Positions 8,138 through 10,152 of a DNA stretch of 64,000 nt are shown here, piece after piece. Each line of letters opens with the position of its first letter. The stretch's first letter is position 1. The notes beneath the pieces are model-generated. The model was not told the DNA's origin. It made no database searches and saw only the letters and a list, made by a program, of their open reading frames with translations. Made by a program: the position numbers and the translations under genes. The stretch is from Basidiobolus meristosporus CBS 931.73. Lineage: Eukaryota > Fungi > Basidiobolomycota. The stretch spans positions 1 to 64,000 of the forward strand of contig MCFE01000280.1 of NCBI GenBank assembly GCA_002104905.1, read 5' to 3'.

Positions 8138-8196
8138 ATCTGATAAGTACTGATTTCGTAGAATCAGATAAGACAGCAATGAGTAGGATCTGATAA
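8138..8196 (+). promoter_or_regulatory. Three ATCWGATAA boxes (SreA/Fep1/Urbs1-type iron-responsive GATA elements) upstream of COMT-like gene 1
   Basis: ATCTGATAA at 8138, ATCAGATAA at 8163, ATCTGATAA at 8188: an exact 25-bp period, about 290-350 bp upstream of the ATG. Confidence 0.7.
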
Positions 8197-8484
8197 AACC
8201 ATTACTGTAATTGGATGGAATGTATGACACATCTAGCTTCATTACTATTAGCCAAATTTTACTATTCCACAAGCTGCCTTCGATATATATTCTAAACTGC
8301 ATATTATGTAAAGAATACAACGCCAAGTCATTACTTCAACCAAGCACTATAGTGATTGTGTGTGTGAGCATCTTGGTAATCCGCAGTTGATTAGAAACTT
8401 GGCTGGAGTCATTCCGTAGCTTACTGGCCGCCTATATATATACCTAGACAAATAGATACTGCATAGCCAGACTACAAGAGAGTA

Positions 8485-9156
8485 ATGACTCCAACCATCT
8501 ACAAACCAGATACTAAAGGATACCTGGACTTTGTCTTGTCCAACTCCACCCCTGGTGATGCCAAGTCTGTTCTCGCCGCAATGGACCGCTATGCCGAAAC
8601 AAACGCTTTGATGCATATTGGTGACAAGAAAGGAGAGTATATAGACGGCTTGATTGGCAAAAACAATGTTAAAATTATGGTGGAGCTCGGTGGATACCTT
8701 GGGTACAGCGCCCTTCGATTCTCCAATCTCCTCCCTGCCAATGGACACTACTACTCCTTCGAGATGAATCCCGAGTTTGCCAGTGTTGCGCAAAAGGTGA
8801 TTGATCATGCTGGACTCTCATCCAAGGTCACAATCATTGTTGGTGAGTTTAAGGTTACCAGTAATGATTTCCAAAGGGTCTGTGGTGTTGAGAAGGTGGA
8901 CATGGTGTTCATTGACCATTGGATGGAGCTATATGTCCAGGATCTCAAGATCATTGAGGCGGCCCAATGGCTCCGACCTGGGTCAACTATCGTTGCTGAC
9001 AACATCCTTATTCCAGATGCTCCAGAGTACGAAGCTTACATTGAAAACGCATCTGCCAAATACTCATCACAGCTGGTTGAGATCGAATTGACTCATCCAT
9101 CAAGACCCACGGAAACACTTGTGGATGGGATATTGATTGCAGAGGTGAAGGTTTAA
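8485..9156 (+). CDS. Catechol O-methyltransferase-like (Mg2+/SAM-dependent class I OMT), intact copy 1
   Basis: 223-aa intronless ORF with LMHIGDKKG, VELGGYLGYSA (SAM motif I), FEMNPE, VFIDHW and VADNI (metal ligands D, D, N). Confidence 0.9.
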   Translation: MTPTIYKPDTKGYLDFVLSNSTPGDAKSVLAAMDRYAETNALMHIGDKKGEYIDGLIGKNNVKIMVELGGYLGYSALRFSNLLPANGHYYSFEMNPEFASVAQKVIDHAGLSSKVTIIVGEFKVTSNDFQRVCGVEKVDMVFIDHWMELYVQDLKIIEAAQWLRPGSTIVADNILIPDAPEYEAYIENASAKYSSQLVEIELTHPSRPTETLVDGILIAEVKV

Positions 9157-9252
9157 CCAAGTTCATATGTATAATTCATCAATAAATACTTGTTTATCTG
9201 GACCTCGTTGAAGAGACTAACCATCAATGAGCCTACGAAGTATTTTTCCATC

Positions 9253-9261
9253 ATCAGATAA
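9253..9261 (+). promoter_or_regulatory. Single ATCAGATAA box between COMT-like genes 1 and 2
   Basis: Exact match to the same consensus. It is isolated, so it may be chance. Confidence 0.3.
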
Positions 9262-10118
9262 TACTACATGAGTGTACAAAAACATTTACATTTACTAACC
9301 TAAACGGAAATTCCATCACAGTGAATAGATGAAACGTGCATATATGAATTTCACTGAATGAAGATGGGAGGCATCGATAGCCAATCATGGGTGGCAATAA
9401 ACATGTGGATTGCACTCAATAATCATCATTAGGCATCAGTCCCAGGAAACTATTCTTTCAGTGCTACCAAAACAATCAGATATCATGATCTTTGTTTTAC
9501 ATTCGACTCCAACCTATAGAATATGCATATGATTACACTAACCCTATGCCTCTCTTGGTTGAACGATCCAGGATAAATTGTAAGCGAATGTTCTAGAATC
9601 AACCCATTGTTCCCTCAAAAATTACCTGTCATGCTGGTTAGCGTGTATTCTTATCTCTTTTGCTGTAAAGTATACGTATGCTTAGGTTGTTCGTGTAATA
9701 TGCTCATGCGAACCCACACATCTCAAATGTTGGTTATAGAGGTAACCCTGCCCACATCTCTACGCTGAGCGGCAGCCATCAGAATAATCATATAGCCAGT
9801 TTGGTGGGCAAGGCTAGTATCTACATTGAGCAACGAGATCAGCCCCACGCCTACTATTCTCATCACGAAAGTAAGGATGATCTAATATAACAATGGGATG
9901 CAATAGATCAAACTAAAGAACTTTGGATCTGACAATATAATAGAGATGTCGGTAGTCGTCAGTGCATAATCAATAAGTAAATAGCATCAGTCGGAAAATG
10001 GAAGATGTGCCAATTGCAGGGTAGCCCCTCTTTTTTCTCTGAATATGTCAAGGTATTATGGTTTACTCAGAATACACCAAGCGCCCTTGATATTGTAGAC
10101 GCTGATTTTTCATTCAGG

Positions 10119-10152
10119 ATCTGATAAGCAATTATGAAGGAGGATCTGATAA
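10119..10152 (+). promoter_or_regulatory. Two ATCTGATAA boxes upstream of COMT-like gene 2
   Basis: Matches at 10119 and 10144, again 25 bp apart, in a promoter that is otherwise clearly diverged from the gene 1 promoter. Confidence 0.7.

Follow-up and report, generated by a model that had tools for sequence, protein, structure and literature searches.

The 64,000-nucleotide stretch analysed here (the window; positions 1 to 64,000 of contig MCFE01000280.1 of Basidiobolus meristosporus CBS 931.73, assembly GCA_002104905.1, forward strand) encodes a tandem pair of COMT-like O-methyltransferases, which we have designated COMT1 and COMT2, each preceded by an array of 9 bp boxes matching ATCWGATAA. 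COMT1 (8485 bp–9156 bp, + strand) was an intact, single-exon gene encoding a protein of 223 amino acids. COMT2 (10405 bp–11076 bp, + strand) was its tandem paralogue and was full length except for an in-frame TGA (10636 bp–10638 bp) at codon 78, where COMT1 reads CGA; COMT2 has either become a pseudogene recently or been misread at this codon during sequencing. Three boxes, all on the + strand, were found upstream of COMT1: ATCTGATAA at 8138 bp–8146 bp (−347 from the ATG), ATCAGATAA at 8163 bp–8171 bp (−322) and ATCTGATAA at 8188 bp–8196 bp (−297). The COMT2 promoter contained two, also on the + strand and both reading ATCTGATAA, at 10119 bp–10127 bp (−286) and 10144 bp–10152 bp (−261). All five were exact matches to ATCWGATAA and, within each array, were separated start to start by exactly 25 bp; every coordinate reported in a preliminary description of the region was reproduced. 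Both arrays were located in 5′ intergenic DNA, in multiple copies and with no gene near on either strand, and no other gene was found close upstream of COMT1.

The whole window contained eight exact matches to ATCWGATAA compared to an expectation of 2.19 from dinucleotide shuffles, and none of 100 shuffles reached eight. The chance rate of about 1 per 65 kb given in the preliminary description was roughly two-fold too low, but the excess itself stands. For three boxes to fall in the 650 bp that precede COMT1, the Poisson P was ~2e-6 under a first-order model. An isolated box (ATCAGATAA, 9253 bp–9261 bp, + strand), which lay 97 bp past the COMT1 stop codon and was separated from the COMT2 ATG by 1152 bp, was partnerless and consistent with chance expectation. 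Exact copies of ATCTGATAA at 13673 bp–13681 bp and 21629 bp–21637 bp were situated inside the coding sequences of two paralogous MFS genes, on the opposite strand, and are probably a single chance match that was copied by duplication. As the matches at 9253 bp, 13673 bp and 21629 bp all fall outside the arrays, the excess over chance in the window is accounted for by the two promoter arrays.

The consensus ATCWGATAA was derived from the SreA regulon of A. fumigatus by Schrettl et al., who noted that the sites at which Urbs1 (sid1 of U. maydis) and Fep1 (str1 and fio1-fip1 of S. pombe) act in vivo conform to it (PMC2610380), so that the motif had been correctly recognised as the published extended site of these iron-sensing GATA factors. 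The boxes of the window resembled the sites at fio1-fip1, str1 and sid1 in having the same 9 bp consensus, in being multicopy and in lying a few hundred base pairs upstream. They differed in that the known sites front uptake and siderophore genes whereas those of the window front a COMT-like methyltransferase of a zoopagomycete. The exact 25 bp step was also a feature of the window arrays, unlike the other arrays that were compared.

A 20.8 kb region around cmt2, a COMT-family gene of Schizosaccharomyces octosporus, was used as a control. It contained eight boxes, all intergenic, compared to 0.81 expected; one of these was upstream of cmt2, three were upstream of str3 (an MFS gene named Str3 by the database) and three were upstream of a ferric reductase gene, which together make up seven of the eight. 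The genes of this locus (KE503208.1, 2917142 bp–2937912 bp) were arranged in a row in the order cmt2, aldo-keto reductase, str3 and ferric reductase. The pairing of cmt2 with the aldo-keto reductase gene was retained in Schizosaccharomyces cryophilus, in which boxes were found just past it.

Loci of further paralogues and homologues were fetched and compared, with a Poisson P calculated for each lineage. The COMT-like genes of Basidiobolus formed a single, genus-specific expansion. One paralogue of Basidiobolus ranarum (L005) had exact boxes at −607 and −345 together with four one-mismatch boxes, spanning −607 to −325 (P 5e-4) and falling in its own intergenic region, and in a B. meristosporus paralogue (L003) one box was present, at about −885. 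The cmt2 gene of Schizosaccharomyces pombe (SPBPB21E7.04c), the product of which belongs to the same protein family as the window COMTs and shares ~45% identity with them, likewise had exact upstream boxes, at −369 and −332 (P 5e-4). The S. octosporus cmt2 had an exact box at −328 (single box, P 0.02) and a near-match at −348, and the S. cryophilus cmt2 had exact boxes at −335, −313 and −23 and a near-match at −361 (P 3e-6). The main box region of cmt2 was between −370 and −310 in all three Schizosaccharomyces species. In S. pombe the boxes occupied the + strand, in S. octosporus and S. cryophilus the − strand; as both strand and position vary between lineages, the sites have turned over and were not simply inherited.

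An environmental sample of 80 metagenomic COMT-like loci (275 kb) was mostly high-GC, with ~17 loci being fungus-like; the taxonomy of these loci was judged from GC content and similarity scores only. The 80 loci contained four boxes in all, three of which were upstream of one fungal gene, L077 (uncultured fungus, contig Ga0302325_10041820), in its upstream intergenic region (P 2e-6). L077 encoded a membrane-anchored COMT-like protein and was arranged head-to-head with a gene encoding a Zn2Cys6 factor, the boxes lying in the 930 bp promoter shared by the two. The association between boxes and COMT-family genes was thus recurrent but patchy, and not universal.

We consider it probable, at roughly 65%, that the five boxes are working sites of a GATA factor of the SreA/Fep1 iron-sensing type. 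From the studied members of this group we infer, by analogy, the identity of the binding protein, the direction of control and its dependence on iron. When loaded with iron, the factor would occupy the sites lined up ~260–350 bp upstream of the start codon and so repress COMT1, as well as COMT2 with its present stop codon; iron shortage would release the factor. As the same type of site recurs at COMT-family genes of distant fungi, these genes would be recurrent, although not universal, members of the iron-GATA regulon, and the COMT family is probably a recurring and overlooked target of fungal iron control. What is described here is a candidate target family for a known type of regulator and no new kind of system. 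SreA homologues have been reported in Rhizopus, another early-diverging fungus (PMC12638772), and Basidiobolus is gut-associated, with an unusually rich siderophore metabolism and strong siderophore activity (PMC7466969). A search with S. octosporus Str3 for siderophore transporters of Basidiobolus returned none named Basidiobolus among the best 120 matches.

Several observations weigh against iron control, the patchiness described above being one of them. The promoter of COMT3 (16347 bp–16973 bp, − strand), a third paralogue in the window with an internal deletion of 15 amino acids, contained no boxes and had no similarity to the COMT1 and COMT2 promoters beyond about −18; the promoters of the neighbouring MFS and SABATH genes also had no exact box. 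Boxes were not found at the other two paralogues of each of B. meristosporus and B. ranarum, upstream of ~16 of the 17 fungus-like metagenomic loci or at the Cryphonectria and chytrid COMT-like loci. Every box contains the HGATAR core, which is non-discriminating and fits other GATA factors. In S. pombe, cmt2 is also counted among the general stress genes, and it was not present in the tables of ferrozine-induced genes or of Fep1 targets of Rustici 2007 (PMC1929147 supplement); its absence from the ferrozine list implies that boxes may not suffice for iron control. The proposal of iron-GATA control in the preliminary description was favoured by the clusters at COMT-family genes elsewhere and by the iron-related neighbourhood in S. 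octosporus, and was disfavoured by the S. pombe ferrozine list.

Alkaline pH limits iron supply. In S. pombe at pH 8, cmt2 was reported in a review on alkaline pH to be the most strongly induced gene, with str1, str3, fio1 and fip1 also being up in these data (PMC12692688). Iron control had been called unexpected for a COMT-like gene, a judgement that is softened by the position of cmt2 at the top of this response along with iron-uptake genes. A role for cmt2 in the response to alkaline and salt stress has been reported as well (Tominaga 2019, PMID 31053915, as cited in PMC12692688). The literature that was searched contained no paper tying COMT to SreA or Fep1, and cmt2 was not described in it as a Fep1 target.

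The behaviour of cmt2 as a core stress and alkaline/salt gene that is missing from the ferrozine list would suit the binding of a different GATA factor, either of the AreA/Gaf1 nitrogen type or another member of an expanded family, in which case nitrogen or general stress, instead of iron, would be the signal. The HGATAR core in every box would fit such a factor, and GATA families are expanded in early-diverging fungi (PMC12638772). We regard this explanation as unlikely, as a plain HGATAR site would have no need of the 5′ ATC extension present in all five boxes, and the same 9-mer occurs at the str3 and ferric reductase promoters beside cmt2 in S. octosporus. Promoters of nitrogen-type genes within the window (three purine permeases and two pyrroline-5-carboxylate (P5C) reductases) also argue against it, having GATA cores but no ATC-extended box. 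These genes form a duplicated nitrogen-metabolism run (27834 bp–30312 bp and 31432 bp–40538 bp) in which two tandem P5C reductase genes are followed by three xanthine/uracil permease genes.

Alignment of COMT1 and COMT2 extended from about −350 to the stop codon. The promoters are thus paralogues of each other: ~350 bp of 5′ DNA were copied along with the gene in the tandem duplication, and the second array, with its 25 bp step, was inherited and does not represent an independent event. The COMT2 box at 10119 bp aligned with the second COMT1 box (8163 bp), the sole difference being at the degenerate W, and the box at 10144 bp aligned with the third (8188 bp) with 9/9 identical nucleotides. The counterpart of the first COMT1 box had degenerated in COMT2 (5/9), where a 4 bp indel had also shifted it. 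A TATA-like run, TATATATATA (8433 bp–8442 bp, + strand; −52 to −43 of the COMT1 ATG), was read from the sequence as a putative promoter element and had a counterpart in COMT2 at 10345 bp–10352 bp. Identity between COMT1 and COMT2 was 17/18 in the boxes compared to 8/16 in the spacer between them and 200/305 across the whole promoter. Synonymous divergence (dS) between the two coding sequences was 0.53 and the ratio of non-synonymous to synonymous divergence (dN/dS) was 0.19, the latter indicating that COMT2 was constrained over most of its history. The boxes were thus better kept after the duplication than the spacer, the whole promoter or the synonymous sites. The preliminary description had taken both motif and spacing to be kept between the two promoters; this reflects the tandem duplication, which removes the independence of the second array.

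The sole independent fact concerning the spacing is the two equal steps in COMT1. A step of 25 bp corresponds to ~2.4 turns of the double helix, so that neighbouring sites would not be on the same face of the helix. The steps at other arrays were 37 bp at S. pombe cmt2, 20 bp at S. octosporus cmt2, 26 bp and 22 bp at S. cryophilus cmt2, 21 bp at S. octosporus str3 and 28 bp and 12 bp at the S. octosporus ferric reductase gene. Close packing of boxes was common and a fixed period was not. With a step of ~2.4 turns, and with other arrays stepping by 12–37 bp, the earlier suggestion that strict spacing reflects phased or cooperative binding is weakened, and the 25 bp step is best read as a local trait of one array that was copied by gene duplication. 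Units 1 and 2 of the COMT1 array had 7/15 spacer bases in common and were both flanked by GTAGR, which may be a weak hint of local duplication.

The same similarity between units 1 and 2, together with the inheritance of the second array, the broken COMT2 and the boxless COMT3, would also be expected of a functionless array, i.e. a chance cluster or an old 25 bp micro-duplication carried along with the gene duplication. This is improbable given the P of ~2e-6 for three exact 9-mers and the conservation of 17/18 box nucleotides compared to ~50–66% around them. Tandem Repeats Finder called no repeat in the array region, and five further lineages had clusters of their own, differing in strand (S. 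octosporus being represented by a single box with P 0.02), both of which also argue against a functionless array.

Basidiobolus is strongly phototropic, and white-collar elements take the form of direct repeats of GAT-type half-sites. That the boxes are light-response elements bound by a white-collar GATA complex is nevertheless very unlikely: three of the five (GATC-T-GATA) contain two such half-sites repeated directly, and white-collar proteins are of the GATA type, with WC-2 binding having been mapped in Rhizopus (PMC12638772), but the full 9-mer is the exact iron-type consensus and its co-occurrence at str3 and the ferric reductase gene of S. octosporus points to iron.

The window genes were true COMT homologues, in agreement with their earlier identification as COMT-like. 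COMT1 matched Pfam PF01596 with 66 bits (cut-off 22) and human COMT with an E value of 1e-41, and a profile search gave an E value of 7e-72. Comparison with animal COMT (PDB 6i3c, 1h1d) revealed the window copies to share its fold family, a similar length, the S-adenosylmethionine (SAM) motif and the Mg2+ ligands. The SAM motif (ELGxYxGYS) was conserved as ELGGYLGYS, and the Mg2+ ligands Asp141, Asp169 and Asn170 were conserved in the IDH and ADN motifs. In contrast to animal COMT, which has Lys144, Trp38 and Glu199, the window copies had Met, Leu and Leu at these positions. The catalytic base Lys144 was replaced by Met in COMT1, COMT2 and COMT3 (IDHWME compared to DHWKD in COMT), and most other Basidiobolus paralogues retained Lys at this position. 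Glu199, which holds the catechol hydroxyl, was replaced by Leu in all Basidiobolus paralogues; MAFFT and the profile alignment agreed in placing DGIL opposite DGLE, although this assignment, being C-terminal, is less certain. The S. pombe Cmt2 differed from the window copies in having an N-terminal extension and in keeping both Lys144 and Glu199, which the 223 amino acid, soluble-type window copies have lost.

The replacement of Lys144, Trp38 and Glu199 means that a catechol substrate is not assured. Methylation of catecholate siderophores, one of the roles proposed for these enzymes in the preliminary description, is accordingly uncertain for copies with Met144 and Leu199. Production of a methoxylated iron reductant or ligand, or detoxification of phenolics, would be equally open as roles. 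We know of no settled role for the fungal COMT homologues.

The COMT genes were surrounded by two DHA2-type MFS genes, a SABATH carboxyl methyltransferase gene and a SABATH relic, all of which arose from segmental duplication. The duplicated COMT–SABATH–MFS unit was revealed by the alignment of 12354 bp–12612 bp and 12874 bp–15172 bp with 18429 bp–18684 bp and 20814 bp–23075 bp. The SABATH methyltransferase relic (260 bp) lay between COMT2 and the first MFS gene, and the two MFS copies were 82% identical. A ‘methylate-and-export’ cluster co-regulated via ATCWGATAA was considered and rejected, the MFS, SABATH and COMT3 promoters having no exact box. Further along the window, the region between 44600 bp and 55700 bp was AT-rich and contained broken pieces of Copia-type retroelements (RVT_2, integrase and gag-pre-integrase).

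To our knowledge, the targets of iron-GATA repressors outside the Dikarya are not well known, in contrast to the repressors themselves and the sites that they bind. More speculatively, the COMT methyltransferases may be an old and hitherto unrecognised branch of the fungal iron-starvation regulon, common to zoopagomycetes, fission yeasts and certain filamentous fungi and lost repeatedly in other groups; under iron scarcity the enzymes would act on iron ligands, of catechol type or related to these, or on iron reductants. We advance this wider proposal tentatively and consider it doubtful at present; if true, it would also account for cmt2 being the top alkaline-induced gene. Should the link between the boxes and iron hold, the SreA/Fep1 site would be extended to Basidiobolus, there would be a simple explanation for why S. 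pombe cmt2 is so strongly induced at alkaline pH, and the COMT-like enzymes would gain a physiological setting, that of iron shortage.

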